NCBI RefSeq assembly: GCF_902459465.1
Contig: NC_047082.1
Coordinates: 6,262,001 to 6,326,000, forward strand
DNA: 64,000 bases
Source: Asterias rubens
Lineage: Eukaryota
Direction: 5' to 3'
How positions within the stretch are numbered: the stretch's first letter is position 1; every line of letters begins with the position of its first letter. Made by a program: the position numbers and the translations under genes. Shown one piece after another: positions 481 to 26,577 of this stretch. The notes below the pieces were generated by a model. The model was not told the DNA's origin. It did no database searches and was given only the letters and a program-made list of their open reading frames with translations.

Positions 481-3400
481 CCAAGCACTTTGTGACTTTG
501 GTGTATTTGAGCTCGTCCATGTCTGGCCAGATAGTCTTGACGATATCTTCACCAGTTACTGCTGCTAAGGAGTTCAATCCAGACGATACCGTACTTTAAA
601 AAAAGGAAGAGAAAAACAGGAATTTACAGTGCCTCAAAACAGAAAGTTATTGATTGCTAGCTGTCTGTGTCCGTTAACTTTTATTTTAGAATGCTACCTG
701 TCAGTTCGTGGCTCTACATCTCCGACTCCCGGGTGAGTATTTTCCTCTTGTTAGAACCAATATCTGAGTGCCAGATATTGGCACTAGGTTTGAGTGGTAC
801 TATCTCCGAGTGCTAACTGTTAGTTCCCGACAGTGGAACTATACTATGAGTGTAGCCGTCAAGGCCTGAAATTGGGCACCACATCTTTCAATGCTATCTG
901 TCAGTGCCCGACATTATTATAATATATATTGCTATATGGCACTGCCTGTTAATAACTTTGGTACTTTATATCTCTGAGTGATATAGCTATCACGGTGCAT
1001 TCACAGACTCCCAAATCGCTACAAAATGTCACTTTCATAATACGCTCATATTGTGGCATTTAGGTCTATATTCTGCAACTTCACATTGGCCAATTGGAAG
1101 GCTCAGCAATGTGTAACTGAATCAGTGATATGAAAATTTGACAAAAATGTAAGCGTGTTTGCGTACGTACCTAAGAGCAGCACTGAAGACAGCAGAAACC
1201 AATAGACCTGGTAGACCAGGGCTGGTGTGAAATAGGTCCATCAGAAAGTAGGGAATCAACTGCAGTGTTGTTAATCAAAAAGTACATTTAATCTGTGTAG
1301 GCCTACACGTATTGTCTCACCACTTGCCTCTTTGCATGCTGTACCCGAAATCATAATCTCAACCAGAAGCTTACAGTTTTAGTGGCAGGCTCTAAATCCA
1401 AATTAGTCCAACAAGGTCCAATAAAAGTCCTCTAAGATATTGGGGCCATCATTGCTGAAGTGCGATCTTGGGTAAATCTGTGCTGGGCAGTGAGTGAATG
1501 CTAAGACTGGGCGAAGTTTGTTAGTTCGAACGGCGAGGCCTGCCTGGCATCGCCCACCATGGCTAAAACACTGGTTCTGACAATATTAACGTACAATGCA
1601 ATGCTACAATCTAAAATACTATCAACAAACAGCAAAGAAAAGAAGCAATAATTAAAAAATATTACCTGGTCGCTTGACTTCACAGATGTAAGTGTAAGTG
1701 GGTCACAGTTAGCATAGTTAGCATACATTACTAGCCCAGCTAAGCATGCAAGGCTAACTACTACCACCATACCAATAACAGCTAGCAACAGGGCACTGAA
1801 ATAAATTAGATAACACATTAATGTGGGTAATACATTCAATCCGGTATTAATACATCCATTTTAATCGTTTACTTTCTGATATAAGCAGACAATTCTAACA
1901 ATTTTATGTAAAAGGACCAAATTACTAATTCAACCATTAGGTGGTACAATGTCCACTGAGGTGTAACCGTCCATACTAAACGTGTAACTAACAGTTAAAA
2001 CTTTTAAATGTGCCGTTAAACGTGCATTGTGTTTTTCTTCCCAGAGAAGAAGTGTTTTTCTTGAGTAACTGAGTACTTTTAAATGTTGAAGAATGTATAA
2101 GTTATTTAATTGCAATGGGGGACAAAGCCTGCACTTCAAACCTGCGTGGTAGGAGATTCTGTCCACACGGAGATTTAGTCCCCCATTTATTAGCACACTG
2201 TGTATTCAAACGCGCCCTCTTACAGCCCATGTGAATTTCAAAAAAGGGGAACTCAATGATGAGGGTGGGAAATGCTTTGAAGATGAGTTTGTATTATGGT
2301 TATGAATGTGTTTAAACAATCGGTTGGTTTGGATTTTGATGTCATACTTATAAACAACATTGAACATTTGTCCCCTGGCTGCCATTGAAACATACGAAAA
2401 GACACTTACACTTGGGCCACAGGTTCTTTGCCGCATGTCAAGTAGCGTTGGACCTGTGCCTGGTTGACACAATAGACGGCTGACCAGGTGAAAGTGCCAC
2501 CAACCACTACAGACCAGAAGGTGTGACGGACTGTAGGATCTGGGTCGAAACTAAACAACAAAATATGATTAAACCAATCCATTAAAACCATGACAGACTG
2601 AGTCAAAATTTCGTTCACATGAAATAGCAACAGTTATTATGCATGTAAATATAAATATAGAAAAATTAGGATAACTGTAATTATGTTGTATTTTCATGGC
2701 AAATCAGCACAACTCTAAAACAATGGATTTTACAAACAAATAAGAAATTCGTTTGGTAAAATGTGGGCGCTTTGAATAATGTGCAGGACTCGAACTATAG
2801 CCGTGACCTAATTGGTGGCTACTACTGTCTGCGTCATCATGCGTTGAGGGTTGAGGTATAGGACGTTCTTAGCAACACACTTAGCAACAGCCATAGCCAT
2901 ATATGTAGAGCCAATCCGCATACTGCCCAAATCGGGAACTCGGTCTCGTGATGTGATTTGAAGGGCCGGCATCAACTTGATTAGTAAAACACCTACAGGC
3001 GGATTTTTAAGCAAACCTTCATTTAAGTTGTCGACCAGACTTTTACATAATACCAAGTCGTTATAGAAAACTATGTAATAAATGTAGTTATTAAAGGTAC
3101 TGTACACTATAGTGGTAATTACTCAAAATAATTGTTAGCACACAAACTTACTTGGTATAACGAGCATACGAGAGCTGTTGATAGTATAAACATTGTGAGA
3201 AACAGCTCCCGCTGAAGTAAAACGTAGTTTTTGGAAAGAGGTATTTTTTCACTAAATTATTTGTTTAGAAGACTTCAGCATGAAGCCATTTATTATATTT
3301 CTGAAAGCATACAAAGAAGTTCAACATAGGTGTTTTTCTTTCATTAATCTCTTGCAACTTCAATGAGCAATTGAGATCAAATTTTCACAGGTTTGTAACT

Positions 3401-6400
3401 GTATGTGTTTTGTGGGGTGCACCGAGTGAGAATACTTGTCTTAGAAAATTATCAAAAGGTGTCCAGTGTCTGTTGTTAAAATTACTCACTTAAAGAAGTC
3501 GATGCGTCCTCCTTTCTCGGCTATTGACCAGACCTCTCCCATGCCTCCAGCCCGAATGCTGCCAGCAATGATAAGGGCAAGGAAACCACTCATCATGATA
3601 GTTACTTGAAACACATCAGTCCACAACACAGCTTTCATTCCACCCTTCAGTCAAGACAAATTAAAACAGTTTTTACAAAATATCATAACAAATGCTGAAC
3701 GGTGTTATGGATTTATAAGTTTCGGCCAAAATGTGGAAAACCTTAATAGTACGGGCCGATACTGTCTTTGTAGTTGTGCATCATTTTGGGGAAAATGGTA
3801 TAGTATAAACATGCACCGGTCAAACACTGGTTTTGTGGCACACCATTGACAATATTGAATAAAATCTGCATTGGGTTTTGTAGCGTTACATCATTTTGTG
3901 GGCCAATACTTGCTTGTAGCTACACACAATTTCGGCAAATATAGCAAATCTTTTCTGGGCAAAAACGTTTTTTTGTTGTTTTGCAGGACACCATTTAATT
4001 TGGCAAAATGGTAGAAAACCCCTATTGGGCCAATACTGGTTTTGTAGCGCAAACTATTTGGGGAAACTGGTAAACGACCTCTATTGTGCGAATACTGGTT
4101 TTGTAGCTGCACACCATTTGGTCAAATTATATAGAAAACCTGGGCCCATACTGGTTTTGTAGCGGCAAAATGGTAAAAAAAAAACTTTTCTGGCTGTAGG
4201 CTGTTTGTATTGTGTGTTTATCTAGTAGTATTTATAATCACGTGTGTATGTTTATCTAAGGGTGCAATTAGTAGTAGATTTAATTAATTATCGTTGTAAT
4301 TCCTTGTTGAATATCAATCGGTTATGTGTTTGTTACCCCATCATGCATTTACCGTGTAGCAGGGCAGAGTCGAGCTAAGATAAAACAAACGTTTGCGCTA
4401 AACGTCGCTCTTTCGTCGAATTTAATCACCATTTTCCGGTTATTTGAGTTCGACACGGTAAAAGTGCGACATTCAGCGCGAACGTCGCTGAACTTACAAT
4501 TGTTGTGTAAAATGTACACACAAGTCCAATGGCAATGACCGAACCCCACAGATCCAGCCCAGTAACTGTATAAAGGCAAAAATAATCAGTTATCGTTCTT
4601 GGTCCATACAATTAATTAATCTTTAGCAAATAGATACAATAATTCCGAGAACAAACTAGCAATACAAAATAATAAATTGATGTCTGACAATGTTCAATGT
4701 TTGCATACAATCTTGATGTTCTTATTACGAAGGTGTAGTTAGCGTATATAAATGTAGAGTAATAGACAACAAACATCAGTATCCCAAAACCAGTGATGAG
4801 AGTAATTGCTCACAAAAAAAGGTCTGAAACTACATGTAGGATACAAATTCTGCTGATAAACGTTGAAATTACTGAGTTATAGATTCCACTGAGCTCTTAG
4901 GAACAGTGTTCTCAGCACTTGAAAAGTAGATCAATTGTTATATTGTGGAAAAAGTAACGGCTAATTTTCGTCACCAGACTGACTTAATTCAGATAAAAAG
5001 TCTGACAAATCTGATCCCTGCAAAACGTGCATTTAAGTTTATAAACTCTCAAAATGAGAAATTCAAGGTATAAAGACATACCCTTTCTAACTAATTGCAC
5101 TGTTTTCAGTTGAGTTGGTATACTACTCGAGTAGGCTTCACCGAGAACGGTACCGGGTCCAAAATAGACTTGATTTCAAAAGTAGACTTGATTTCAAGTC
5201 TGAGACCGTGATTATTTCTCTGCATCAGCCACACAGAATTCACCCGCAGATTAACTATAACTTGCTCTAACTCGCAGTCTCCAATGACAGAGGTTAATCT
5301 GCGCTATTTCATCAGGCCACAATGTTGGTTTTCGGGAAGACTAAAAAGCCACGACCACAGACAGTCCAGGTCCAAAGTACCCTGATACCCGAACACATTC
5401 ATAAAGCCTGGTTGCACCATCGAACCTGACCTTACCGCGAACTTCATTAATATTATCGGGTTCAAAGTTGGTCAACCTTTAATACTGCGGATTGGGAAAG
5501 AAAAAGACTTCGTATACAATAGTCTTACCTGCACTTAAAGCAAGAGCCGGCGCATAGATTACAATGCCCATGTAGATGACCTGGGGAAACGGGCGAAGAA
5601 CACGTAATTATCAGTCTCATGTAAATATTATGGGTAACGAATTACAGGTGTTTGCATCAGCTATATAATGTTAGCACAGCCCCCCCCCCCCTCCACACCC
5701 CTGGTGCCTAAATTTGAAATCTGGACTAGTAAACTAATTAATCGTCAAATGTAACTTGTATCAGCTATAATGTGTGAAATGTTTATAACTATTGTTCCAT
5801 TTTATCACAGACATTCAGACAATTGCTTTTTGGGAGCCACTTCAGATTATCTCAGAAAAACTAGTGAATGGTATAACAAGAGCACTGAAGGGTGATCTTG
5901 TTTAGAGAAAGGCAAACATAAACTACTAGAGTTTTACGTTGTTATCATCACATTGTACCCCTAAATGATTCACTAGTTTCGTCGCTGTTTTTAATCATTG
6001 CATTTCATTTTGATTATTCTAGCCGTCATACCAAGAACTCCCATTACCAAGAATTTCATGGAAGGAAGTTTCAGATTTAGATGTGAGAGGAAAAAAACAC
6101 CACATAAATATTTTAGGGCCGTGTATAGTGTATTAACCAACAGAATTTCCTTTGCAAGAAAACTTGCAATACTTCCAAAGAAAGTCAATGTATACACACA
6201 ATGTCAACACACAAAATTCAAATGATTTATTGTGTTGGATTTATTGAAAAGGTATACGTGCCGACTCCATGGCGTCGAAAGCTTTTCAGGGACAACGTAT
6301 GGATACTTGGTACGTAGGCTAAACAAGAAAAGAACTAAGGTAAATTCTGCTAGATCTTACCATTTGTAGAAAGAAGGTCAGCATACCACATATTCGCATG

Positions 6401-9400
6401 ACCTTATTGAACCTCAGCTCCAGATACTGTGCATGGGAATTGAACAATATAAAAGTAGGCTATGTCAAATGAAGGACAATGCAAAAAACTATATAGAATT
6501 GCGATTCAACACATGGTGTGATACCTACTGGATGGAAATATTTACTTGTTATCAACTCCATATTACAGTATCCCCTGAAAAGTCTCTTTAGTTTTATTAT
6601 TACGACCTGCGTTATGAGAATTGTTTTCTTGTCACGTTGAAATAACCAGTATAGGAAATTCTTGACGAAACATACAAATATTGTAAAACATTTTTTTTCT
6701 TTAATATCCGACAACCAATATGACGAAACTGTTAAAGATTGAAAATAATATGATCTTGTTGTTGATGGTGGAAAACTTGTTGTGTGATTCATTTATTATC
6801 TATTGTGTTTTCTGCCTCTCTCTCCCTGGTCTCTATTATTTCCATTTGACTGCTTCAGTTGAATGGGTTTTGTCATTTAGCCTTCAAAAACGACTCTGTT
6901 ATTATTAAAGTTGAAATATCAGGCCAATAATCATGCTTTGAATCTTAACAACAGGAGCCAAACCTGTCTAATAAAATCAGTCATAATGTCACGCGCACTC
7001 ACAGACAAGGTTGATTATGGTTATTGATTATAATGTTATTGATAATTTAAAGGGAAGGTACACGTTTGGTAATTACTCAAAACAAATATTAACTTAAAAC
7101 TGACTTGGTAACAAGCATTGGAGAGCTGTTGATAGTATAAAACATTGTGGGAAACGACTCCCTCTGAAGTAACGTAGTTTTTGAGAAAGAGGTAATTTCT
7201 CACTAAAATATTAAAAGACTTCTATCTAGAAGTCTTTTTTCCTAGCACGAAACACACAAAATCGTCCAACAAGGGTGTTTTTCTTTCATTTTTTCTCGCA
7301 ACTTCGATGACTAATTGAGCCCCAAATTTCACAGGCTTGTTATTTTATGCTTAGCTAGATGGGATACACCAAGTGAGAACACTGGTTTTTGACAATTACC
7401 AATAGTGTACCTTCCCTTTAAGGATAGGAACGAATATGAGTACTCATTCAAACACCCACACATTTAACCGAAATAATTATTAACGTAATAATACTATCGC
7501 AAATACATAATGATTCAGATACCCATAATCCGGAGGTCGTTGGTTCAAGTCCTGCTCAGTGACAGGCGCGTGGTTGTACAAAAATGGATATATTGAAAAG
7601 AACAACAAGATATATATATCGGTGTAGAAACAAAATTAATTGAATTTTCTGGGAATTCAATAACTGAAAGGATCTACACCACCACCACCACAAAAAGAAT
7701 GTAGAAATAAAAACATTGCAGTTTTCTTTTTCCTATTTCCAAATCCAAGGTTTGGTTTTAGGTGTTTGGATATGTTTTTCTCTCATCTTCTTTTTGTTTC
7801 AGGGGTGTTTTCCCCTTGGAGGCCGGCCTCACAGAAACTGAAAACAGCACAAGGAATACAATGGCTTAATCATAACATACGTTCGCATTTACTTCTAGGG
7901 AAAATGTGAATATACAGAATGTATTTTCGTGCCTTTTTATAATTTGACCACTCAAGATGATTGTTATTCAAATGATTACTATTTTGTTACTGTAATTTTG
8001 GCCGTTGGCCACGAATGTAAAAAGAAACAAACCATCTATCTATCTATCTAACTAAATAGTATACACTGAGCTAATTTTTCTCGGATGTTTCTGTATGCAT
8101 GCATCAAAACCACCATGGTAAGAGTACGTTGTCATAAATTTCAAGAAAAACATATGTTTACATTTGATGTCCCGATTTTACTTTACCTTGATTGCGTGAT
8201 CCAGATCCTAAACCTGACCATAGTTTTAGTAGGCCAGCCAAAGTGTGAAATTACACTCTGGACGCTAAGTTTGTTAATGGCTGGCATCCATGCTAGATGT
8301 ATAGATCATGGACTCGGGAAGACGATTAGGGTGGATGCCCAGCTTGATTTTGAATGTTAAGGTCATTTTGGGGTCAAAAGGAAAAAAAGGGTCAAAAAAC
8401 AATATTTTCAAAATCTGTGTCAAATTTAATCACATTTGATAGATCTATCCATAAAATGTATTTTTAACTTTATGTTGATATTACAAACCTATGTAATTAA
8501 CGAATAAACTTTGACCTTGTACACAAATGTATAGCAAAACAAAGTGTATAAGTGTGATTATCTTGAAAAGGGTACATTTTGAGTACACCAATTGTTTTTT
8601 TCACTCCCCATCCTCATTGGTGCATATTATTGGTTTCAAACAACTTTTTTTGAAAGGTATAAATATACCCAGGCAGTTTTTGAGAATAAAACAAAAATTC
8701 AAGTACCACCTTCATGTGGGGTAATAACGACTCATTTTAAGGTCAACATTTCAAATAAGACAAACATTTTGCATGTTATAAATGTTCACAAAATTTAACC
8801 CCGAGTGATATAGGATATAAATAGACGTAAATATTCTACGCAGACATTTCGTCCTTTGACATGTTTCAGAAATTTTGCAGGATACATCTTTCGTAGCTGA
8901 ACGATTAAACACAATCCATCCGTACATCCGTTAAAAATATTTAATTTAATTATCAGGAAGTTTTTTTTCGAGAAAATGTTGTCTACCTGTACGTGCACGA
9001 CCGCATTATTTGTATTGTCGATCGACGGACGGGAACATTCGCCGTACGTGCATTCAATCTGGACAACGTATACACCTTAAACAGGAGTGTCGGAACAGGT
9101 GTGCCGGAACAGGTGTGCCGGTGTGGCGGTTTCAACTTTCCGCTGTGTTCAGTTTTCCGAATGACCAAATACGGTAGCATTACGTCATGCGATGCCTGCG
9201 CACAGCAAGCGAAAGTAGTCCATTTTTAGTGCCGTATTGAGTCATCCGTTACCCTCCGGTAGCTGTCATGGCGGCGTCCACGAGTCGAGTACAACTAGCG
9301 GCAAACGCGCGTGGATCGTATGAGTTGTTTTTTATGCAAGCAGAGTGTGACCTGCCTAAGTTGTACACATGAATACATGTCAAGATGGGGCAAGAGATTA

Positions 9401-12400
9401 TGTGACTACACAGAAAAGAATCGTAATGAACAATTTGGGGTCACTGCTCAGAGAACTAAATTACTCGCCAGGGTACTCGCGGCGGTATCTGACAGGTCAC
9501 CCGGAAAACTGAACACGCCGGAAAGCTAAAACCGTTCGAACAACGTGTTGATATGTCCGACTACATCACCCGGAAAACTGAACACGGCGGAAGACTGAAA
9601 CCGCCACACCGGAACATAAATGTGTAACCTTACCGATGTATTGGTTTTGAACTGCGAACTTTAATGCGCCTCGAGAATGGAGTGGAATGAGATTAATATG
9701 GTTTGCGGTAACACCACATTTGTATGTACTTGCCAGGTAGAGTTTGTTCTTAGAGAACTGTCTTGCTTTATTCTACTACCACGGAGAAGATTGTTCGGGT
9801 GTTCGGAAGACTTATCAGTTCTAAAAAGAACTGTCCTGCTTATTAACTATTACCCAGGCGAATGGTATAGAAAATAGGCTGGGACTACTACTTAAAGCTT
9901 ATAGGATCGTAATTAACTGTTCTACCGCGGAGTCAGTTCTTAAATAATATTGGTCTCAACGTTTCGAATGAGATTACTTCCAAAAAGAGTTTAAAATTAC
10001 TTGTAGGTTAATTCTTAAAAAAAATGTTAAACTGTTTAACTTTTAACTGTTTTAAAGCATTTAATTTGTAACACATTTCCCTTTCGTTTAACCTTTACAC
10101 CGATGTGTGTTAGCATTTTATACTCATTACTTTCCGAGTTCTGTGAAAACATCACAGGCATCTATTCAGGTGGGATTTGAGCCAACGACCCTTGTCAACC
10201 TAGAGCAGATGTATTACCAATTAGACTACCTAAATTGCCAGGTAGATAGAGATAATAGATGTTAAATTTGCATCGGGGATAGTACTGTATACTCAGTACT
10301 TTCCCGAGTCATGTGAAAAAATATCACAGGCATGTTACTCGGGTGGGATTCGAACCCACGACCCTTGCAATTCTAGAGCAGTGTCTTACCAACTAGACAA
10401 CTGAGGATGTTCCTGGCAGCTAGAGGCAGTTCGAATCTAGGTAGATAGAGGTTTAGGCAGCCGGTACCGCCGCAAACATTCCATATATTTGTTGTTGTCA
10501 AATTGATGATCACGCAATTGTTCTGATAATACAGAGTATTCGAGATTTGGAAAGAATTACCTTCCGCGGTACCTGACACTAGAGATCAATTGTTGCATCT
10601 GGAAAAGTGCTCAGAAAGTGATAAAAGCATGAAACTTGGCACAAGTATTCTTCAACCCATACTGATTATTTTTAGGGGTAGACCCATTAAAAAGGTGCAT
10701 TTTCCTTAGCAACTGTTGCTAGGTAACACTTTTACCCTAGCAACGGCACTTTTAAGCCTCCCTAGTGCACCCGGATGACTTTGTTCCATGTTACAGGACA
10801 TTATAGCTATCATTAGACATGTTTCAAAGACAATCAGTGTCATCAGGAGACAACACAATGCTACAAGTGTCACCAGAAAACAAAACAAACGTTTGTTTTG
10901 TTGCTACAAACTTAGTAGTTTGAATAGTAAGCGATAATGTTATCCCGGGATGCATAACAACACGAATCCAACCCTGTGGTCCGTTCTCTATGATCCAACT
11001 AATCACCTATTAAATTCAATGCAACAACATAGTCAAAAGCCACCCATTCAAAAACGTTCGTTATCTTTACTGAAGAAAATCTTGTGTAAATTTGCTAAAA
11101 CGGCTTCTTAGTTTGCTTCAGACACTATAAAAATGGCAGACATCAAAGGTAGTCACGATATGAAAACGTTTGTGGTAACACCATGAAATGACCATCTCTT
11201 TACGAGTTGGGTGGTTCGGAAAAGAACCGTTGGTTTCACCGTCGGTTTCACCGTTGGTGAGTATAAACCAACGGTTCTTTTCAGAACCACCCCTACACAT
11301 TAAGAGATAGTCATTGCATTGTGTTACCACAAACCTTTCCATATCGTCCACCATGCAAAGTTTAAAATCCTACCTAAAGGTATTAATCACATCACTAAAT
11401 TGTCAAACGAACAAAGTTTCAATCCCTAATTCTAAAACTGACGTTATTAGATAAAGTGCATTAGCCAATAGTATGACTATAGTTGTGGGCTCCGCAACCT
11501 TTAGTCAGGAAGAGCATCACATAGACCATGTAGTAGCGCTTGCTGGTATTTCTGAATATAATTGATTCTCCTCTCAAACATGGCCGATGGAAAACTGTTT
11601 CAGCAAAGAATCGTTATGTATAATGAAATAGAGCAAAACGCTTGAAGATATCCAGTGTGTTCATGAACCACTCCCACCACTTTGACGGAACATTCTGAAG
11701 CTGTGTGAAAATAAGTGCTGAGATCTTTAATTTTTAATTCTATAAAGGAAAAAAGGGAAATAAAAGGGTATAATAAAATAACTTGTGTTTCTGAAAGCTT
11801 AACTCCGGGATATGTGTGTGTATATATTTGTGCCTACTGGTTTTTTTTACCAATGTATTTTTGACAAATATAATAATAATTTCTTGTTTAATATCCTTTT
11901 CTTGGTTAACTTCTACTTTATGTAATTTTTTTAACATATGATGTTGACATGTGCAGTTCAGTTTTTAACTGCGAGACATGTTTTAATAAACCATTTTTGA
12001 ACTGAATTGAATATACTCCGTGGAACCGTGGAACCAGGCATGAGCTAAAACTATAGACGTTATGAACTGTGACATTACATGCCACTATAAGCCTGGACTT
12101 CCAGCAGGCATGATTTTTATACAGCTCAATGGAAGACAAATACAATATTGTAGGGAAGTTGCAAAGTCCAATTTGTATCAACTTTTCTATATGATAAAAA
12201 GGGGGTACGTCTCGAAACTGGTTCAGCTGTTAAAACTCTTGATTTATGAGGAGATTATGACACACAATGTTAACTTTCAAATATGACCAGTTCAGTATTT
12301 GGCTTGGAAGAAAGACCCCAAAATTTACTAGTTATGTCGCGCATAATGTAAAAAAGGGTTAACCTCTGTTTCTTTTTTGGTAATACAACATATCGCCAAT

Positions 12401-13694
12401 GCAGCAATATCCCTCCGATACTGTCTTGATATTTGTTTACATTAATTTCAGTAATGTGTGCCTCCTTTCCTCATGTCGTCATATAATATGAAACTGATTT
12501 CCATGATGACCGCAACGAAGTAGCGTAACAAAAATATAAATAATGTTTTAAACAATAGCTGCAAATTATAGTGACATGCAAAATGGCAATAGATAATGTT
12601 ATAGCGATACGCATGCGGCATGCGCGATAATTGGGCCCTGGGAAAACAGTAGGAACATTATCGGGCTGACCTACACACTACCTACCACATCACATATAGG
12701 CGTTGTACACCTTTCGGGCTATGCTATCACAAATGTATTTGTTTTCTTCCAAGTGCAAACACATCGGAAATAAAGCATGGCTGACGGGTACGCACACGGC
12801 AATTTGAGTAAGGGAAATCAATTTTAGACTTTGAACAACACTGTTCACAGGTTAAGGGGAACTTATGAGCATTCCCCGTAAAAACGTAAGACCCCTCGAC
12901 CCCCTACGTAGGTTTGCCTGTTCGAAGCGATTGCCACAGAAAGTTCATCAACTGTGCGTCTGGTAGAGCGTAGGTTTCACATCCACACCACAACTAGCCT
13001 TTAGTCAAGGCGCACGCGGCACGCCGGATGGCACGCACAACCCCAAAAATGTAACGCACGAAAAAAGACTAGCGAAGCGCATTTACCAACTCGTTTGTGG
13101 CCTTATGTTTTTCTTTACATTTGCCAACGATTTTGGTGGGAGAAAATGTAATGCATAATGCATTAGCGTGGTGAGTTGCTGGCCAATAAGAAGCCACAAT
13201 TACTTGCATGACGTCACAAGAACGTTCGATGCAAATTCGTTACATTTTCTCCCACCAAAATCGTTGGCAAATGTAAAGAAAAACATAAGGCCCCCCCCAA
13301 AAAAAAAAAAAAAAAACGAGTTGGTAAAGGCTGGACTTATTCTTACCTCAAATGCGCTTGTCACATCCAGCCTAAAAAATATTGGCAAGAAACACCTGGA
13401 CGTAAAGAACCCAGCAGCGATGTAGGCGAATCCGTACAGCCAAAACATACAGCCGTGAGTGTAGTTCTCTGCCGGTGTTCCCAGGAAGGTTATTGCCGAG
13501 ATGAAGCTGGCTACTAGGGACACTGCAACAGGAATTGGACTCATATTGCGATCAGCCATCAGAAACTCCTTGGTGGTTTTCTGCTTTCCTCCGGTCAGGG
13601 CATGGTAGACACCAATAGCGCTAGATACTAACAGAACACACGCAAATACGGCATAGTCGGCAGCGCCGAACACTCTCATTTCTTCGGCAACCAT
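481..13694 (-). CDS. SLC5 sodium:solute symporter (SMCT/SLC5A8-A12, SMVT, NIS group); multi-exon, 3' end outside window
   Basis: GT-AG exons with compatible phases: 13347-13694 ([10 protein letters not shown]...GGKQKTT...TSAFE), 6361-6426 (YLELRFNK), 5529-5580 ([17 protein letters not shown]), 4498-4565 (VTGLDLWGS), 3490-3644 ([13 protein letters not shown]), 2410-2550 ([12 protein letters not shown]...VNQAQVQRY), 1666-1795 (CDPL...DQ), 1171-1259 (LIPY...PGLPGL), 481-593 ([14 protein letters not shown]). Hallmark SLC5A5/6/8/12 motifs; exact orthologue not resolvable. Confidence 0.93.
3091..3472. mobile_element. TTAA-flanked non-autonomous DNA transposon (Kolobok-like MITE), degenerate copy
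   Basis: Starts TTAAAGGTAC...GGTAATTACTCAAAA and shares the internal sequence of the 7047, 29123, 41275, 42822 and 60156 copies; right end degenerate. Confidence 0.7.
3750..4175. repeat. Degenerate ~55-65 bp tandem repeat
   Basis: Recurrent core GGGCCAATACTGGTTTTGTAGC followed by ATTTGG/AAAATGG in about 6-7 diverged units. Confidence 0.6.
7047..7421. mobile_element. TTAA-flanked Kolobok-like MITE
   Basis: TTAA-AGGGAAGGTACAC ... GTGTACCTTCCCT-TTAA terminal inverted repeats. TTAA target with RR...YY termini fits Kolobok rather than piggyBac (CCC termini). Confidence 0.8.
9040..9660. repeat. Degenerate inverted-repeat (foldback) element
   Basis: CCGGTGTGGCGGTTTCA...GTGTTCAGTTTTCCG at about 9118-9160 is the reverse complement of CCGGAAAACTGAACAC...AAACCGCCACACCGG at about 9570-9615; a second direct copy lies at about 9500. 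Outer limits uncertain. Confidence 0.5.
10095..10480 (-). mobile_element. Two tandem copies of a tRNA-derived repeat unit
   Basis: Minus-strand tRNA-like heads at about 10165-10230 and 10338-10405 (A box TCTAGTTGG, B box GGTTCGAATCC) sit in shared flanks (ACACCGATGTGTGTTAGCA..., GCAGCTAGAGGCAGTTCGA). Same unit at about 35185-35510. Confidence 0.7.
11169..11335. mobile_element. Short hairpin MITE
   Basis: GTTTGTGGTAACAC...GTGTTACCACAAAC termini with imperfect pairing along the whole ~165 bp. Confidence 0.65.
12995..13331. mobile_element. Truncated palindromic MITE (TAGCC...GGCTA family)
   Basis: TAGCCTTTAGTCAAGGCGCACGCGGCAC left arm matches the full copy at 27577-28021. The central part is in the opposite orientation and the outer right arm is missing. 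Confidence 0.75.
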
Positions 13695-15720
13695 GTTTAC
13701 AACTCGTAATAGACGTGACTTCCGTGCGTTTAATTCAACTGCTTGACGTGCCTGGGCCAGCTGAGAAGTGAACAACTATGGATCAGTTGTTGGTGGGCAA
13801 AAGAAAGCACCAGCTGTAGGTTCGCTCCCTACACCCCTGGTACGTACTGTGTGTGCTTTCACCCAAATCACCCACACAGCCAACCACGCATCACTGATTA
13901 TCAGAAGTTTGATTATCGGCCAAACCACTGCGATTTCAACATACTCGACAAAGAATCAAACAGTTTTCAGACACCTTTCAAAGTTTGACCTAGTTCCAAC
14001 AAGATCTATGTTCGGTGAAAACAAACGTAGAACCCTCCGACCCACAGCTTAATGCATTTACCATGATGGGTCAAAGGTGGCACTGCACATGCAGTTAGCT
14101 GCTGTTTTTCATGTTCGTGGTTTTTTTTAATGGAAACTCACTGCCAAAACCGAACTCAAAGTGTACCGAACGCCAAGTTCAGCTGCATTTAACTATAGCA
14201 AGTGCACATACCGTTACAAACTCGGGTGCATGTCGCATTCCTAAAAGGGAACGTTTTAAAATATCGTTAAAACCTCGGCTAAATTGACTACAACGGATCC
14301 GCCAAATCTGTAAAAAGTTAACAATAGCCTAATAGTGTTGATTTCACGTCCCACTGGCTCGTTCAATACACCACAAACACAAACTAAACCGAATGGAACT
14401 GTGTGTGAGAATTGTTCTGTGATTTTGCGACTGCACATTTATTATATTTCAAGGCTCTCTGTGGATTTGCATAATGCCGTTTGCCGATCGTATGGTGGCC
14501 CTGAAGGGACAATGAACATAACATTGACTTCAACATTCCGTTGTCCTCCACTTTCACACCTAAATAAGTATCTTTGTAGAATCCCACTTCGCCGAAAAAA
14601 AACCTCCGGGGAATTCAACTCTTGATGGCAAACTTGCCATTAGTGAAAGAGACAGCTACATGTTTGTTCCACTTTCAACAATAAGTGTTGTTTAGAATAT
14701 GTCTTTGAAAAGAACACAAAATATAAACTACGAATACTTTTAAGTAAAATAACGTTAACTCATACGAAGCATTGGGTGGCTAAGTTGTTGATGTTTTTGT
14801 TTCACTTTAACGGATACAAACTACACGGATTGTGGTTTTGTAAACGTTTTTGAAACCGTTTATCTGTCTCGATTGACTCGAGTGAAGATGATCAGATCGT
14901 ACTCAGTGAATAGCGCCCTCTTGCTTTCACATCATGTTTCGGGAATTGCGTTTTTTTAGCGGCCGGTAAAAACAGAGGGAAATGTAAAGTATGTCATGAG
15001 GTCATTTCCAAGGTTATCATTGTTCAAGAAGCTCATACTGAATGTTCAGACCCGCTCGTCTGACATTAAAGTAAGCCATTAGTTTATAGCTACAATATCT
15101 TTCACGGTTGAACTTTAAAGAGTTTCAAATGAACACGGGTCTTTGCACTTTCCATAAACATCTGATGACGTTGTAAATCTGATACTGCGAACATTAGACA
15201 AACCGATTTTGAAACAATATTTCCGCAAATTTTACCGCAAAACATGTGCATCAACTCAAATATAAAAACATTGTTTTTAGCGAGCCGCTAGCTGACGGCT
15301 GACGCCCGGATTTTGAATGTTTTTAATAAGCAATGTTTTGCTTTTTGTGGTTAGGGAATTAGGTAGGTTTAATGGTCCCTTTCCATGCCATGCCTTTCAC
15401 CCCTGTGGAACCCGATTTAAAACCCGGTTCGAACCCCGCCTAAGATTGGAACCTTGCATGTAGGTTTCAGTCCCAAACGAGTTTTCTTCCAAGACTTAAA
15501 ACTTTCTTCTTTTTTTTCCGATGTATTCTGTTATTGGGGCTTCTTGATGTCGTTGGATGCATGTGTAAATAAATAACAAAGTGAAAATAATTAAGAGCCT
15601 TGCTCGATCAATGCAATTTAAAAAAAAAAAATCTTAAAGGCACTTTCTGTTACGACCGGAAGGTATAAGTCTCGTGACTTTCCGTCAAGAGTAAAAAAAA
15701 AACAAAACACGAAGGTCTGT

Positions 15721-16110
15721 TTAAAGGAACACGTTGCCTTGGATCGGACGAGTTGGTCGTTGAAAAGCGTTTGAAACCGTTTGTTAATAAATGCAAATGG
15801 TTAGATAGATAATTTAAAAGTAGAATATAATGATCCACACAAATTTGCCTCGAAATTGCGTGGTTTTCCTTTTACTTCGCGAACTAACACGGTCGGCCAT
15901 TTATTGGAGTCAAAATTTTGACTCCCATAAATGGCCGACCGTGTTAGTCGACGAGATAAAAGGAAAACCAGGCGATTTCGAGGCATATTTGTGTAAATCA
16001 TTGTATTCTACTTTTACAACATCTTTCAAACCATATACATTTTATAACAAACGGTTACAAACGCTTTTTATAGACCAACTCGACCGATCCAAGGCAACGT
16101 GTTCCTTTAA
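15721..16110. mobile_element. Fully palindromic TTAA-flanked MITE (Kolobok-like, second family)
   Basis: TTAAAGGAACACGTTGCCTTGGATCGG ... CCGATCCAAGGCAACGTGTTCCTTTAA; the inverted symmetry runs to the centre GAGTCAAAATTTTGACTC (about 15915). Confidence 0.85.
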
Positions 16111-16575
16111 ACTCCATCAATTCCCGCATAATGCCATAACGTCGTCATCTATTGTTGCAGACTTTTAGTGCACAGACCCTGCGGCTAAAGTCATTCATCT
16201 TGATTTCGCCTGGCCCGTAAATTTGCAAAAGGTTCAATTGTTAGTTTGAATGAGAAAGGACATTATTTAAGGCTCAGACAGAGAATCGCGAATCGATGAT
16301 AAAGTCATTGTGCGTGTTGATTGTTTTACACATGACTCGGGAGTAATTTACACACATCGGTGTATGGGGGTAAAAGTCAATATATAATAATTTCTCGGAT
16401 TTTGAATCTTAACTCAAATTCACTCGTTACATGTTGACCATGCTGTATTACACATTAGTTTTCCGTACGTCCCTTTTTCGAGGGGTGGGGGAGGGGGTGC
16501 TTGTGAACACTCTTAACGTCATTCGCACACATTTACAACCTCCCTGTTTGTACTAACACGGGTTCATCAGTATGA

Positions 16576-17125
16576 AGGTCATACGTCTTATTACAGGTCA
16601 TACATCATATTACAGGTCATACGTCATATTAAAGGTCATACGTCATAGTAAAGGTCATACGTCATGATACAGGTCATACGTCATATTGCAGGTCATATGT
16701 CATATTACAGGTCATACGTCAAGGTCATACGTCATATTAAAGGTCATACATCATATTAAAGGTCATACGTCATATTACAGGTCATACGTTATATAACAGG
16801 TCATACATCATATTACAGGTCATACATCATATTAAATGTCATACGTCATATTACAGGTCATACATCATATAACAGGTCATAGGTCATATTACAGGTCATA
16901 CGTCTTAGTACAGGTATTACGCCATATTACAGGTCATACGTCATATTTAAGGTCATACCCCATATAACACAAAAGTCGTTTGTCATATTACAGGTCATAC
17001 GTCATATTAAAGGTCATTTGTCATACAACACAGGTCATCCGTCATATTACAGGTCATAACTCATACAACACAGGTCATACGTCATGTTAGAGGTCATACG
17101 TCATATTAAAGGTCATAAAGGTCAC
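16576..17125. repeat. 20-bp minisatellite (AGGTCATACGTCATATTACA)n
   Basis: Roughly 27 units with point variants, visible directly. Confidence 0.9.
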
Positions 17126-17937
17126 ACTATATTATTGTTCTGTTCGAGCAGGTTCTAAAAGACCCATTCAATCTATGCTAATGGTGAGACAAGAAATGCA
17201 ATCTGTAGCCATGGGGTTGAAGGTGAATTTGTCGACGTGTCTGTCTGTACTTGTACAATAACTATAGTGCATTCCAACAATTAATAGGCTGATGCATTCC
17301 AACAATGAATAGGCTGAAACAGCGGTCAGTGATTGAAACAAACAGCGAGTGTGTAGTTAGCATTATAGCATCTAAACTATCCTCGGTTTCAGGCGTTACA
17401 GGTAGGACCCACCCGTTTACCAGTATCAGCTTTCACTGACGGTGTTGAAGTAGAAACTGCCGATTTCGAAGCAGTGGTTCCCAAGAAGGCAACATTTCAG
17501 ACAGACTGTTGTGCCAAAAATGTGTTGTTTTTGATGATTGTATCTGATGATCTGACCAACAATCTGGGTGTTGTTGGAGCGCTTTCCCAGTGAAAACGTA
17601 CAACCTATGATCGTTGAACTACTGCACAGCAAAGCGGACACACAATGGGTTGTTTTTTGTACATGACTGCATGTCCCCATGAAAAGCATGGCCATTGACC
17701 TCAACTTGAGAAGTAACCTGTCATATAGATTGTCTTAACACCTGCAGCCACATCTGCCGGGGGAGGCTGAAACAGCAAACAGTTGTTTTTTTGCTTCCCT
17801 CTTTAGTAATAGCAAATTTACGATTTCAGTAGTTTTTTCCATAGAATATTATAATGCAATGATTAATTTAGCAAATGATACAATAAAACACCCACAAGTC
17901 TGTATTGTTATAGAGGGCCCTGTCACTTGAGGTAACT

Positions 17938-18154
17938 TTTACAAGCAACCTAAAGGCAAACGCAGTGCTTTACATGAGCAACCTAAAGGCAAACACGCAG
18001 TGCTTTACATGAGCAACCTAAAGGCAAACACGCAGTGCTTTACATGAGCAACCTAAAGGCAAACACGCAGTGCTTTACATGAGCAACCTAAAGGCAAACA
18101 CGCAGTGCTTTACATGAGCAACCTAAAGGCAAACACGCAGTGCTTTACATGAGC
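17938..18154. repeat. 35-bp tandem repeat, ~6 copies
   Basis: Unit GAGCAACCTAAAGGCAAACACGCAGTGCTTTACAT, nearly identical copies. Confidence 0.9.
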
Positions 18155-18439
18155 ACTTCGGTGTCACACCAATAGATTTTCAAACAATGTCAAACGAACC
18201 CAAAGAAAAAATTGTGAATTCAAATATGAAGCCTTTATTTCATTGAGATGGCCTGGAACTGGTTGTCTATAAAAAGTGCCTCGTGATTTACTAGTTAGAC
18301 TCATCATAAAAACTCATATTAAGCGGGCTTTCTGTGCTTTTTAATGTTAGGTCTGAAGTAAAATAAAAACTCGATAACTTAAAAGAAACACTCTATTGTA
18401 TAATAATGTGGTTAAGGATAACAATATTAACAACTTCAC

Positions 18440-18784
18440 CTCGAAAGCACTGGTAACCCGCAGACGGTAGAATATAGGAAGGAAACATCGAGATGTCCAG
18501 AGACCAGTGAGAATGTAGCTAGGTGCATAAAGCCAATACATGCAGCCATGGATGTAGTTCTCAGCCGGTGTCCCTAGGAAGGTGATTGCAGATATGAAAC
18601 TAGCAACCAAGGAAATCGACACAGGTATTGGATTCATGTTGCGATTTGCCATGAGGAATTCATTGGTTGTTTTCTGCTTGCCACCGGTGCATGCATGGTA
18701 TACGCCAATACCGCACGCTACCATCAGGGTACAGGCACATACTGCGTAATCCGCCGGCTGAAATGTTGTATTTACTTCAGACAT
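18440..18784 (-). CDS. Second copy of the SLC5 first coding exon (exon 1b; N-terminal TM segments)
   Basis: Open frame MSEVNTTF...TSAFE followed by a GTGAAG donor in phase 0, the same boundary as the 13347 exon. About 78% aa identity (82/105 from ADY onward) to the 13347-13694 exon. Acceptor-like ttccacAG at 18829-18831. Confidence 0.88.
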
Positions 18785-19052
18785 TTTGCTCTACGATGCT
18801 TTGGCCTTCGTGAAATTGTTGAAGCAACCTGTGGAATAAATGAGACAAACAAATGAACAATTGTCTGCCCAATATGTTTCGTTATAATACATTTCAGCAA
18901 TAATCCGATTTATCGGAATTACATTATTTCATCGATAAGTCAAACACAAACAGCAAGAGTCCACGGAGGCCATGGTAGTGCCAAGCGCGTGCACGTGTTT
19001 TATACAATGTGTCTTGCGATTATATGCCGGCTGCCATACATTTAAACCATAG

Positions 19053-19666
19053 TGTGATGAATCAATATTTTATGATACCCATGGGCATTTCGTTAATTAC
19101 GGTGATAAAAAGTTTGTTGAATGACTTTGGTAAACGATAGAGGGCGCCATTGTACTTAAACGGTAGTCGCACGGATACAAATGTCAAGGATGTAAAAAGG
19201 CATAACTTTTTGGATTATTTTATCTGAGAAAGAATTTGGGTCTCAATCTTGTCTTTATTCTTGTATGTAATGTAATTGTACCCGTTATTACAAATATTCA
19301 CTATGCTATTTTCAATATTCAGCTCATTATAGGTGAGTTTGGTAATTAATCAGTGTGTAGCGTAGTAATTTTAGCCGGGTTAGGCGGAGGGGTCTATTTG
19401 TTGCGTCCTTTTTCGTTGTTGGTCTCTAAATGAGTGTCACGTATGACAATGATGAGAGGGTAAAATCCAACATTCGGGGTGGAGGAAGAAGTTGGAGAGA
19501 CCCGCTCATGGAGCCAGTTTGATTGCCAATAAATAGAGGAACGGATCGGTTGGTTTTCTTCGGATGGTGAATAAATCTGTCAGCAGAGTAACGTATCAGT
19601 GAGCAACCCAAAAACAAGGTGTCAGGCCTTCCTTAATTGTCTCCGGACTGATAACAAAACACTACA
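19053..19666 (+). repeat. 5' LTR (614 bp)
   Basis: TGTGATGAAT...ACACTACA; differs from the 3' LTR at one position I could find (G19284 vs A26809); AATAAA at about 19528 and 19570. Confidence 0.96.
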
Positions 19667-19670
19667 AATT

Positions 19671-19687
19671 TGGTAACACGGATGGGG
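19671..19687 (+). promoter_or_regulatory. Primer-binding site
   Basis: TGGTAACACGGATGGGG, 4 nt after the LTR end, complementary to a tRNA 3' end CCCCAUCCGUGUUACCA. tRNA identity unverified (Leu-like is a guess). Confidence 0.7.
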
Positions 19688-20172
19688 TTGCTTTAATCTG
19701 CTGCTTTGCTGGTTGTCGTCCAGTACATTGAGGGCATTGGCCGAGTTCTGAAGAGGGAGTGAGGATCCAAGTGGAGGACAGCGACTGGAATAGCCTGTGG
19801 CAGTGCAAGTGGAGAAGCCCGGTGGCGGTAGTGCTGTTGGACCCTTTTGGAGCTACGAACTCAACCTTTACATGTGCATGTACATGTGAAATCTAATGAC
19901 TCTGAACTGAACTGGACTGAACTGGTTGATCAGCAGTGAGGTGGGATTATGCGATTCAATTCGCACATTGTTGGTAGGATTTAGATAGGCCTATATATAG
20001 TTTGTTAGTCAGTAAATATTACCTGATAATGTATAGGTGTTAGTTTTATTCCTAGTGAAAACCAACCGGTCCTGTTGAAGCAAATTTACCTGGGTTTAGG
20101 TGTTTATGACTTAATTTTGATTGTACAAATTGGTTAGCCTTCAATAACTGAATCATAATTTCTTGACTCACA

Positions 20173-21279
20173 ATGGCCGTACCAGAGGCTGATCTTGTGA
20201 CGCGCTTGGTCGCAGGGCTGACCGAGGCACTTCGGCAAGATAAACCGAAGAATGTCATTCAGAGGCCCTTGAAGTTGGGTAAATACTATGGTAGGCCTAG
20301 TAAACCGGGAGATCCGACCATTATTGAATGGCTTGAAGATGCAGAGGTTTATCTGCAACAATGTCGTATCCCTGAGGTAGATAGGGCTAAAGTGGTTGTC
20401 CACCACCTCGCGGGTGTTGCTCGCGATGAGATCAAATGCCACAATGAGAATGTAACGGGTGACTATGCAGCGCTAAAAAAACTCCTTCGGCGTCAGTTTG
20501 GGGCAGAGGAGTCAGTACAGGCCCTGCAGAAGGCCTTTTTTGAAAGACGGCAAAGGGAAGACGAATCCCTTATGGATTTTTCCCGCTCGCTCATGCGAAT
20601 GCATGATCGGATTTTAGAGGTTGCTACAGAAACAGAGAAAGATGCATTGAAGGGTTTGAGAGATAGGGTTTTGATTGGGCAGTTTGTGGCGGGCGCAAGG
20701 AATCAAGGTGTCAGGCTTGAGCTGAGGCGCTTAGAGTTGGCTGAACCGGATCAGGATTTTACCGAAATGAGGGATTCAGCTCGCGAGTTGTTCAGAGATC
20801 TAGAGGAGTACCCTCGGGGTTCTCGACGTGGTGCAAGTGTGCACTTGCATCACCTAGGTACAGAAAATGATCTGAATAGTGACGAGCCAGTGGCTGATGC
20901 TAATGTTAGCATTAACCAAGTAGTTAACAAGTCCCAAGGGGACACACAGTTGCAAACAGTGTTGCAACAACAACAAGAGATTCTTAAATGTATGCAAACA
21001 CAGCAAGAAACTCTTTGCAAACAGCAGGAACAGATAACTACGCTTATGCAAGCAGTGGTGAAACAAAGTGGGACGGTAACTAGCCAGGGCATGTATGAAG
21101 GCTCAGGAAGGCGGCAGGACAGGCCCCCGATTCGCTGTTTTTATTGTAAACGCCCAGGTCACATGAAGCATGAGTGTAAACTTCGTATGGCTCACGAAAA
21201 AGCGAATGGGGGGCAAGGGCAGGCTATGGGAGATGCACAAAACACAGGGTCGGGAAACCAGACTTCTCTGCCACTGTAG
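20173..21279 (+). CDS. gag: Gag (capsid region resembling PNMA-type gags, plus CCHC zinc knuckle), 368 aa
   Basis: WLEDAEVYL...HHLAGVARDEIK capsid-like region, Q-rich coiled segment, CFYCKRPGHMKHEC (CX2CX4HX4C). Confidence 0.93.
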   Translation: MAVPEADLVTRLVAGLTEALRQDKPKNVIQRPLKLGKYYGRPSKPGDPTIIEWLEDAEVYLQQCRIPEVDRAKVVVHHLAGVARDEIKCHNENVTGDYAALKKLLRRQFGAEESVQALQKAFFERRQREDESLMDFSRSLMRMHDRILEVATETEKDALKGLRDRVLIGQFVAGARNQGVRLELRRLELAEPDQDFTEMRDSARELFRDLEEYPRGSRRGASVHLHHLGTENDLNSDEPVADANVSINQVVNKSQGDTQLQTVLQQQQEILKCMQTQQETLCKQQEQITTLMQAVVKQSGTVTSQGMYEGSGRRQDRPPIRCFYCKRPGHMKHECKLRMAHEKANGGQGQAMGDAQNTGSGNQTSLPL

Positions 21280-21284
21280 GCCGA

Positions 21285-24200
21285 GTGACAGAGGAACAAT
21301 CTGGAAAGGCCTCACCAGTTGGAAGTGTAACAGAGAAGTCTTATGAAGACATACTAACCAGTCTAGTAAAAGAGAGCCCCAAGGCTCATATTGCTTTGGC
21401 TGGAGTGCCAGTGGAATGTATCCTCGATACCGGGGCAGAGACTTCTCTGATTAGCGCCTCTTTTTATAGGGATCACCTTGCAGGGAAATTGAGTGGAGTC
21501 AAAACTCTAGGTACTTACCTGCGTGTGTTTGGGGCAGGGAATAGTGAGGTACCAATTGAGGGGTACATACATGCCCCACTGATGGTACATAACCAGACTA
21601 TTGATGCACATTTTTTGGTGGTCAAAGAATTTCCTAAGGGTGAGGCAGGGAATCATAAAAGTTTTCCAGTATTGTTGGGTTGCAATGTCCTTCATAAGCT
21701 GAAGGATATAGAGGTTGATTTAGAACAAAAAGATGCAGATGCATGGACAATGGCCATTAATTGGTATAGTCTGACTAAAAACCCAGTAGTTGAGGGGTCA
21801 CATGGGGCAAATAAGTGTGTACGGGACCCACTGGGTGCTCGTACAGGTAGAAATCCAGTACATTTGTTGCCTAGGGAAGTGCGTAGTATAACCTGCTATG
21901 TTCAGGCTAATCAAAGTAGCCTTGACGGGCAAACTGTCCTTGTTGAGGGTCTATCTAGCTGTGCAGATAGTGGAGGTCAAACCAGTAACATAGATGGAAA
22001 TTGCCGCGTTTACGATCTGTGTACAGTAGTTAGTGGTAGAACTGTAAATGTGTTGGTAGCGAATGTAGGGATGCGGGTGATTGAATTGTCCCCACACACA
22101 AAGCTTGCTTACGTGACTGAGGTATCCTCAAAGACAAATGTTGCACTTGAGACGGGTGTGGATTGTGTTCATGTTGTAGTGAATCATTGTCTGTCAGAGT
22201 CTGGGGAATATTTAGACACTGGTCGTACTGAGGGAGCCCCTGGTGTCGATTCCAATGAGTTAGACATTGAGATGGGGGATGCTGTAGAGTCACGGGCAAG
22301 AGAGTTGTATGTGTTTGAGGATGGGTCAGAGTACCAACTTCCTTATGGATTAAGTCTTGATTTATGCGCTGATTTGTGTAAGGAAGACCAGGACAAAATT
22401 GTGCAATTAATTCAGAAACATGATAAGGTGTTCTCGCGGAATTCGTTGGATTTAGGACTTTGTGATAAGGTTCCCCACAAGATTGACACTACTGATGATA
22501 AATCAATTAGCCAGCCTTACAGACGAATTCCGCCGCAACATTTTAGAGAAGTTAGGGAATTACTCCAGAAGTTTCTTGATCAAGGTATCATACAAAAGAG
22601 TAAAAGCCCCTATGCCAGCCCCATTGTATTGGTCCAAAAGAAGGATGGGTCGCTAAGGATTTGTGTTGATTATAGGAGGCTTAATGCCAAAACAGTACGA
22701 GACTCATTTCCATTGCCTCGTATCGAGGAGTCGCTGGAGGCGCTCCAGGGTGCAAGGTACTTTTCTTCATTAGATTTAGCCCATGGATACCATCAGGTTG
22801 TAATGGACTCAGAATCAATAAGTAAAACTGCATTCAGAGTACCTTTTGGGCTGTTCGAATATACGAGAATGCCGTTCGGGCTGGTAAATGCCCCTGGAAC
22901 CTTTCAGAGAGTGATGGAGATGTGCCTTGGTGACTTGAATTTATCAGAGCTTTTAATCTATTTAGATGACATCCTGGTATATTCCTCTACGGTACAGGAA
23001 CACATAGATAGGCTTGACAGAGTCTTCACTAGATTGGCAGATTTTGGACTTAAGTTCAAGGGTGCAAAGTGCAAGTTATTTCGTAGGCATGTGTCTTACT
23101 TAGGACATGTGGTAGGGCCAGAGGGTGTTGCAGTAGACAATGACAAGATTAAGAGAATTGAGGATTGGCCAATACCTAAGACAGGGGCACAATTGCGGTC
23201 ATTTCTTGGTCTGGCCGGTTATTACCGGCGCTTTGTACCCGGCTTTTCAAAAATTGCCGCACCCTTGCATGCTTTAGTGCCCTCATTGGCTAAGGGAAAT
23301 TCGAGATCCAAACCTTCGCCATTTTGTTGGAGTTCTGAGGCACAGGTGGCCTTTGATACATTAAAGCAGACCTTGACGCAAGCACCAGTGCTTGCATATC
23401 CAGATTTTTCTAGGCCATTTGTGTTGGAGATAGATGCCTCCTTGCAGGGTTTAGGAGCTTGTTTAGCTCAGTGCGACAAGGAAGGCAAGAGACATCCAGT
23501 TGCATTTGCTAGTCGGGGGCTGAGGGGGGCTGAAGCTAGGTACCCCGATTTTAGTTCTTTTAAGTTGGAGCTTTTGTCCCTAAAATGGGCTGTGGTTGAT
23601 AAATTTAGAGATTATCTCCTTGGGGTACCATTTACAGTGCTAACAGATAATAACCCCTTATCTTATCTACAGACAGCTAAGTTGGGCGCATGTGAAATGC
23701 GCTGGATAGCACAACTTGCAGCTTTTACCTTTGATGTGAAATTTAGATCAGGGGCTAGTAATCGTGTAGCGGATGCACTAAGTCGCAACCCAAGTCACTC
23801 ACTAACAGGGGAAGTTGAGGAAATACTGCAATGTAAGGTCCACTCCACAGTGGTTCCATTGCAACATATAGAGGTACATAAGGTATTAACTTCTCATGAT
23901 ACAAAGGCTGGACCTCCACAGGTTAAGTGTCAATCAGGTATTTTCCCATCGTGGACACCAGAGCAGCTGTCTGCCCTACAAAGGGCTGATCCAGTGCTGA
24001 AGTGTATCTGGGAACGTTGGGATCAAGGTTGGAAACCGAATGAAGTTTTTCAGGCTGAAAGGGAGGAGCCAGTAGAAATCAAATCGTGGTTGTGGCAGTG
24101 GCCCAGGTTCATAGAAAAGGATGGTGTTTTACATCGTCGTGTCATGGACCCATTGCATGGTGAACTAGATCAAGTACTGATGCCCACAAGTTTACAACAG

Positions 24201-26564: not shown

Positions 26565-26577
26565 TAGTAGGGGAGAA
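26565..26577 (+). promoter_or_regulatory. Polypurine tract
   Basis: (T)AGTAGGGGAGAA immediately before the TGT of the 3' LTR. Confidence 0.8.

Follow-up and report, generated by a model that had tools for sequence, protein, structure and literature searches.

How does a single transporter body come to be served by two homologous first coding exons lying 4.7 kb apart, and are both of them used? The question is raised by a stretch of 64,000 nucleotides (the window) at positions 6262001-6326000 of contig C22 of the starfish Asterias rubens, whose minus strand carries a gene with a single copy of an SLC5A8-like body downstream of two such exons. A preliminary description, made from the letters of the window, had proposed two interchangeable N-terminal exons on a common body, and this proposal is now borne out by two RefSeq isoforms, by assembled contigs that end at both donors, and by orthologues of both exons that are under purifying selection. 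We conclude, with a probability of roughly 90%, that the locus is one gene of the SLC5A8 branch in which either of two homologous first coding exons is spliced directly to one shared body.

The distal exon (exon 1', 18440..18829, minus strand) comprises a 5' untranslated part (18829..18785) and a coding part of 115 codons (18784..18440), while the proximal exon (exon 1, 13347..13752, minus strand) comprises a coding part of 116 codons (13694..13347) and a transcribed 5' part reaching at least to 13752. Each encodes the transmembrane (TM) segments TM0-TM2. From the ATG codons at 18784 and 13694 the frames are open to a TSAFE motif, whose last codon ends at 18440 and 13347, respectively, and there both exons close in phase 0 on a GT donor (GTGAAG after the distal and GTAAGA after the proximal exon), with positions and donors exactly as first described. 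Both match the first 63-67 positions of the Pfam SSF profile (PF00474) above its gathering score, the remainder of the profile being matched by the body exons, via homologues. The two products share 85 of 115 aligned residues, and the DNA shows 75.8% similarity over 227 nt, limited to the coding part; a DNA comparison of the flanks of the two exons found no homology. In a stretch of 20 identical residues, the previously reported count of 10 codons differing synonymously proved exact.

The acceptors postulated for the two exons fared differently. An AG lies directly upstream of 18829, and contigs of two sequencing runs (X3 and X4, described below) break at that point. The site ending at 13761 is an acceptor-like pyrimidine tract with CAG (ttcacttctcag; 13753..13775, minus strand, within an open reading frame (ORF) of 13200..13775); it is so far a sequence feature, with no contig break at 13761 in the four runs. 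The 22 codons from this site to the proximal ATG (13760-13695, minus strand) are open and in frame. Exon 1' spliced to 13760 would encode a tandemly duplicated TM0-TM2, comparable to the 'AF' variant of NKCC2; no transcript with exon 1' spliced to 13760 was seen.

The two-isoform model of this gene is already present in RefSeq, which annotates the A. rubens locus as 'sodium-coupled monocarboxylate transporter 1-like' with three isoforms in one 90% cluster (P0217). Isoform X1 (XP_033644941.1, 629 residues) starts from the proximal exon and isoform X2 (XP_033644942.1, 628 residues) from the distal exon, and isoform X3 (XP_033644943.1, 607 residues) departs from X1 in its last coding exon alone; no RefSeq isoform contains both first exons. 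By peptide mapping, isoforms X1 and X2 fall exactly on the genome, without mismatch, as 15 coding exons each, of which only the first differs. The difference between the two proteins is confined to residues 1-116: residues 1-115 of isoform X2 are exactly those of the distal exon, and residues 1-116 of isoform X1 exactly those of the proximal exon. Common exon 2 (YLELRF...FLQM; 6361..6426, minus strand, 22 codons, phase 0 at both ends) is bounded by CACAG before 6426 and GTAAGA after 6361, encodes residues 117-138 of X1 and 116-137 of X2, and offers the shared acceptor for both first exons. Thirteen shared coding exons follow. Exons 3-9 lie at approximately 5577..5530, 4566..4498, 3644..3492, 2549..2409, 1794..1666, 1259..1173 and 595..482 on the minus strand, as placed by exact peptide mapping (P0319, P0217) and by tblastn (P0014); the last six lie past the window start and reach position -10410. 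Alternative last coding exons of the same gene also lie to the left of the window, at -7240..-7296 (isoform X3) and -10288..-10410 (isoforms X1 and X2).

To locate the body, a full-length sea urchin homologue (P0014, Diadema) was compared by tblastn with 114 kb of DNA free of runs of N, namely the window extended by 40 kb on the left and 10 kb on the right. Every body exon found for this gene lies downstream of the proximal exon; exon 2 and the later exons have no copy between the two first exons or anywhere upstream to 74 kb, in agreement with the earlier statement that the interval between them holds none. Among proteins, the 115-residue distal exon used as a query matched intron read-through ORFs of genomic contigs but no spliced fragments; the RefSeq isoforms were reached with the full-length homologue. 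Among PDB sequences, the closest solved structure to full-length isoform X1 is human SMCT1 (PDB 7SL9, E = 4.7e-172, residues 9-559 aligned), followed by SMVT (3.2e-158), NIS (2.3e-141) and vSGLT (1e-31), so that X1 stands closer to SMCT1, SMVT and NIS than to the SGLTs. Judged by these similarities, the gene belongs to the SLC5 or sodium:solute symporter family, and within it to the SLC5A8-like (sodium-coupled monocarboxylate transporter) branch.

Evidence that both exons are transcribed and both donors used comes from contigs of four runs (X1, X3, X4 and X6) placed on 13330-19329; of these runs X6 is recorded as RNA, and the type of the others is guessed. Runs X3 and X4, both from A. rubens, each include a contig whose limits are exactly 13347-13721 or 13347-13729 and a second (X3 record 13, X4 record 21) with limits of exactly 18440-18829 and 27 extra letters past the donor. 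Contigs ending at 13347 (X3 record 7, X4 record 15, X1 record 1) likewise carry 27 further letters each. The distal contigs extend past the acceptor at 18829, by 17 letters in X3 and by 144 in X4; since this acceptor is used, the distal exon follows an upstream non-coding exon. With contigs from two studies ending exactly at 13347 and at 18440, both donors are used, and both exons are transcribed.

The length of the overhang is itself informative. The two first exons share only their final GAG, and the base before it differs (T against C). A 31-mer graph cuts merging paths 30 letters past the last differing base, and the expected continuation is therefore GAG plus 27 letters. The CAG at the end of intron 1 would make the overhang 28 if the paths merged through unspliced RNA, and branching at the donor predicts an overhang of 0, which was seen for the distal exon in run X1, where an unspliced contig exists as well. 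An overhang of 27 letters at both donors therefore implies that both exons are probably joined to the same downstream sequence, and it provides indirect but quantitative support for that conclusion. Among the joints listed, the exon 1' contigs of X3 and X4 show no fork before 27 letters past the donor, bearing in mind that contigs drop rare forms. A common exon stands after both first exons; use of 13761 from a common upstream exon was not seen in the contigs. The junctions from 18440 and 13347 to 6426, proposed earlier as a check, are accordingly upheld in part: both donors are cut, and the 27-letter overhang has the length expected for convergence on common exon 2.

These elements can be assembled into a simple scheme. 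Each first exon supplies the start codon together with TM0, TM1 and TM2, and either of them, through its phase 0 GT donor, is spliced to exon 2 at 6426 and the 13 shared exons to yield transporters of 629 and 628 residues. Transcription from a distal start would give a non-coding exon spliced to 18829, and hence isoform X2, with the proximal exon removed within the intron. A proximal start just upstream of 13694 would give isoform X1, with the proximal exon as the true first exon. In our own estimate it is probable that the choice between the exons is made in this way, by two transcription starts.

Comparison with relatives indicates that neither exon is a recent arrival. Between the distal and proximal exons of A. 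rubens the proportion of synonymous sites that differ (pS) is 0.77, which is saturated, and that of nonsynonymous sites (pN) is 0.167; between orthologous first exons of both types pN/pS is 0.11-0.17, and among distal-type orthologues in four species it is 0.11-0.14. By these measures both exon types are old and under purifying selection, as the preliminary description had surmised. Both N-terminus types recur among the isoforms annotated for A. amurensis, Patiria miniata and Acanthaster planci. When 46 first exons were placed in a maximum-likelihood tree, the distal type formed a clade of members from A. rubens, A. amurensis, Patiria and Acanthaster with support of 100/99, and the proximal type one with 84/75; all asteroid exons group together (98/93), and four exons of the brittle star Amphiura form a clade of their own (97/85). 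Since these clades run across orders, the duplication is older than the split between Forcipulatida and Valvatida, which took place roughly 200 million years ago. On this tree the duplication postdates the brittle-star split, or else the exons were homogenised there.

The layout itself is also shared. The genomic order distal, proximal, exon 2 recurs in Acanthaster and Patiria, with exon 2 mapped in Acanthaster. In Acanthaster (L036) a distal-type exon at 10001-10345 is followed by two proximal-type exons (a, 16179-16532; b, 20874-21224), with exon 2 at 28076; a fourth copy, at 22388-22642 of the same locus, is cut by a stop. Patiria (L038) has copies at 13308-13652, 16160-16510 and 19955-20308, the third of which is without a GT donor and has a Gly-to-Asp change in its LGTPAE motif. 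Amphiura (L037) has five within 3888-20836, with exon 2 at 24886; two of these are 5'-truncated or frameshifted, and one, outside the called gene, is a recent duplicate with 96% identity. Copy number is therefore 3-4 in Acanthaster, 3 in Patiria, 5 in Amphiura and 2 in A. rubens. Judged from these loci, the design is an array whose members are born and die, A. rubens having the two-member version. A decayed third first exon was considered in the window at 9431..9095 (minus strand), where weak collinear protein similarity is found at the place corresponding to the third exon of Acanthaster; it was rejected as not significant, the score being equalled by 10% of Markov-shuffled introns, and neither blastn nor nhmmer gave a DNA-level match at 9431-9095.

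Isoform pairs that are identical except in their first 110-122 residues are annotated in Lytechinus, Antedon, Apostichopus, Glandiceps, Ptychodera, Branchiostoma and the scallop Ylistrum; these pairs are taken from protein annotation rather than from the DNA of the loci. They suggest that the exchange of the N-terminus alone is a recurrent evolutionary solution across echinoderm classes, hemichordates, amphioxus and a scallop. Full-text searches of the literature yielded no article dealing with SLC5A8-like genes that have alternative first exons, or with the gene structure of this family in echinoderms.

What the exchange may accomplish can be approached through ungapped alignment to known structures, in which residue n of isoform X1 corresponds to residue n+1 of SMCT1, n+3 of NIS and n+15 of SMVT. 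TM1 is identical in both isoforms, including the positions aligned to SMVT Phe79, Ala84 (SMCT1 Thr70) and Val88; the Thr of the TM1 kink is thereby conserved, SMCT1 Thr70 corresponding to X1 Thr69. The positions aligned to NIS Met90 and Gln94 are also the same in both. In all asteroid sequences the two types differ at fixed positions in TM0 (F17C, S24A, L33C), in TM2 (F84Y, A90S, and in addition F/I97W) and elsewhere (R7T, V8T, F107Y). Two of these align to residues of known importance: F84/Y83 to SMVT Tyr99, a residue of the extracellular gate (PMC13454448), and A90/S89 to NIS Gly93, where side chains other than Gly face the substrate cavity and alter iodide affinity and Na+/perchlorate stoichiometry (PMC6316985). 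In SMVT, TM0 is peripheral and packs on TM4, TM5 and TM8, and the TM1 kink holds the substrate carboxylate (PMC13454448). By analogy with NKCC2, discussed below, the isoforms may differ in gating, affinity or coupling, and tuning of substrate or ion binding by the first exon is plausible.

A broader reading can be put forward tentatively, at somewhat less than even odds. Ambulacrarians, and perhaps amphioxus and some molluscs as well, would carry in their SLC5A8-like genes a birth-and-death array of interchangeable TM0-TM2 modules that diversify the gating, affinity or Na+ coupling of one body, and the two sea-star types would have been functionally distinct since before the Forcipulatida-Valvatida split. 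If so, the distinction would rest on residues such as Phe/Tyr at the position of SMVT Tyr99 and Ala/Ser at that of NIS Gly93. The locus offers a clean natural experiment, in which one body of the LeuT fold has been combined with two TM0-TM2 bundles kept apart for an estimated 200 million years. The part played by TM0 and TM2 in gating, affinity or ion coupling in the SMCT/NIS/SMVT branch could be read from a comparison of the isoforms, or from exchanging the handful of residues that are fixed differently.

Several points weigh against the account of two directly spliced, separately started first exons. The junction from 18440 to 6426 rests on the length of the overhang together with the RefSeq model, and the one run recorded as RNA, X6, covers the proximal exon alone. 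We infer a separate promoter for each exon, and the acceptor-like site at 13761, with its open frame, leaves room for a design of cassettes behind a shared promoter. Lastly, given that the two forms differ neither in TM1 nor at the residues that align with NIS Met90 and Gln94, they could be kinetically equivalent.

That last point leads to the rival that survives best, namely that the isoforms are functionally equivalent and that the exons have been kept by differently regulated promoters, a regulatory subfunctionalisation in which the residue differences are historical accidents. We regard this as possible, although less likely than not. It is favoured by the identity of TM1, kink included, and of the two NIS-aligned positions, and it is in keeping with contig depth, a poor measure, for which the distal:proximal values across runs (316:58, 45:36 and 56:97) hint at independent regulation of the two exons. 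It is opposed by the at least seven positions fixed differently by type across two sea-star orders, and by the alignment of two of them to residues with gating or substrate-handling roles in SMVT and NIS, which makes a difference in transport plausible.

The second rival concerns the manner of choice: the two exons would be mutually exclusive cassettes, with a single promoter and a single 5' non-coding exon common to both, in the style of exon 4 of NKCC2. The distal exon is itself internal, its acceptor at 18829 being used, and an acceptor-like tract ends at 13761 ahead of the proximal exon. Moreover, the proximal contig of run X1, which carries T79I and A93G as does the X1 protein of A. amurensis, is continuous from 13347 to 14470, and transcription therefore crosses the region upstream of the proximal exon. 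These features are outweighed, in our judgement, by the lack of any contig break at 13761 and by the behaviour of the A. rubens proximal contigs, which end at 13721, 13729 and, in X6 record 23, at 13752, fading as expected near a transcription start. Inclusion of both exons would furthermore stay in frame, and nonsense-mediated decay could therefore not enforce exclusivity. Cassettes of this kind are accordingly an unlikely arrangement.

It is far less probable still that the distal exon was left orphaned when part of the SLC5 cluster was duplicated in tandem, and is now a pseudo-exon, or an exon included in the gene model in error. The gene does lie within a tandem SLC5 cluster, and Patiria and Acanthaster do have first-exon copies that have decayed. 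We nevertheless reject this reading, which is contradicted by transcription of the exon, by its exact cutting at acceptor and donor, and by the conservation of its orthologues in four species (pN/pS as above); the frame is intact, with ATG and GT donor present, and in run X1 the distal contig is deeper than the proximal. The least probable explanation, that there are two complete paralogous genes of which one body was lost from the assembly, has no supporting point and was rejected, given the gap-free 114 kb and the several first exons before one exon 2 in the independently assembled Acanthaster, Patiria and Amphiura.

With two alternative first exons on one body retained as the best account of the gene, its surroundings may be described. 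The first exon of the next SLC5 paralogue lies at -21579..-21911 relative to the window, in the tandem cluster. At least five SLC5A8-like genes are grouped on C22 at about 6.12-6.28 Mb, with SSF first-exon matches at 6119452, 6139031, 6190358, 6240074 and 6275365; at the Pfam threshold, two first exons are found only in the gene of the window.

On its other side the distal exon is adjoined by a full-length Ty3/Gypsy-type retrotransposon with long terminal repeats (LTRs), at 19053-27190 on the plus strand, which begins 224 nt upstream of the acceptor. Its near-identical LTRs start at 19053 and 26578, 7525 bp apart, and its ORFs encode a gag protein of 368 residues (PNMA/Retrotrans_gag) and a pol protein of 1304 residues with reverse transcriptase, RNase H and integrase. 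At least ten further paired copies with 98-100% identity are present in the genome, and long contigs from the RNA-type runs match the element. The non-coding exon joined at 18829 must accordingly be located within the element or farther upstream, and a block of GC skew at 20-28 kb is likewise explained by its presence. The segment 19053-19329, with AG at 19051-19052, had been considered as the terminal exon of a plus-strand gene; it was rejected, being the 5' LTR of this element. Between the two first exons, a repeat of very high copy number occupies 15720-16110, with a related fragment near 18245. The summed contig depth of this repeat is approximately 4x10^5 in the RNA-type runs, and many contigs fork at 15720/15721 and 16110/16111; its layout is palindromic, with similar ORFs at 15801-16001 (minus strand) and 15830-16168 (plus strand).

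The architecture described here is well known from other genes, and both isoforms are already in public annotation; its place among known systems may therefore be stated briefly. NKCC2 (SLC12A1) is a cation-coupled transporter of the related LeuT-type fold. In its exon 4 variants A, B and F, duplicated alternative exons exchange TM2 and alter both ion affinities and tissue distribution (PMC2790964). The resemblance lies in the clustering of isoform-specific residues of the starfish transporter in TM2. The NKCC2 exons, however, are internal, mutually exclusive and 96 bp long, whereas the unit in the starfish is a whole first coding exon of about 345 bp that spans TM0-TM2, and a functional effect would be argued by analogy. 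A catalogue of tandem duplicated exon substitution events in human genes, which the starfish design resembles in functional character, describes exon duplications of ancient origin, isoforms that arise by homologous substitution, and strong conservation (PMC9741552); the starfish case differs in residing in an echinoderm SLC5 gene and in involving the first coding exon. Human SMCT1 (SLC5A8) resembles the starfish protein as its best structural match, with the Thr of the TM1 kink conserved. To our knowledge, vertebrate SLC5A8 has not been reported with alternative homologous first exons.

The closest parallels in gene structure are UGT1A and the clustered protocadherins, and the comparison with them drawn in the preliminary description is apt as a matter of architecture, more so given the arrays of three to five exons in relatives. 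As in those systems, tandem homologous first coding exons, each with its own start codon and donor, precede one constant set of exons, and the array grows and decays by the birth and death of exons, some copies being pseudo-exons. The A. rubens gene shows the features of a variable first exon in having two tandem homologous exons ahead of one body, each joined to the first constant exon. It departs from UGT1A and the protocadherins in that its array has two members, and in that the distal exon is not a true first exon, a non-coding exon being spliced to it at 18829. It departs from them further in that the promoters proper to each exon are inferred, and in that the variable part is not a separate domain but three helices of a 13-helix transporter core.

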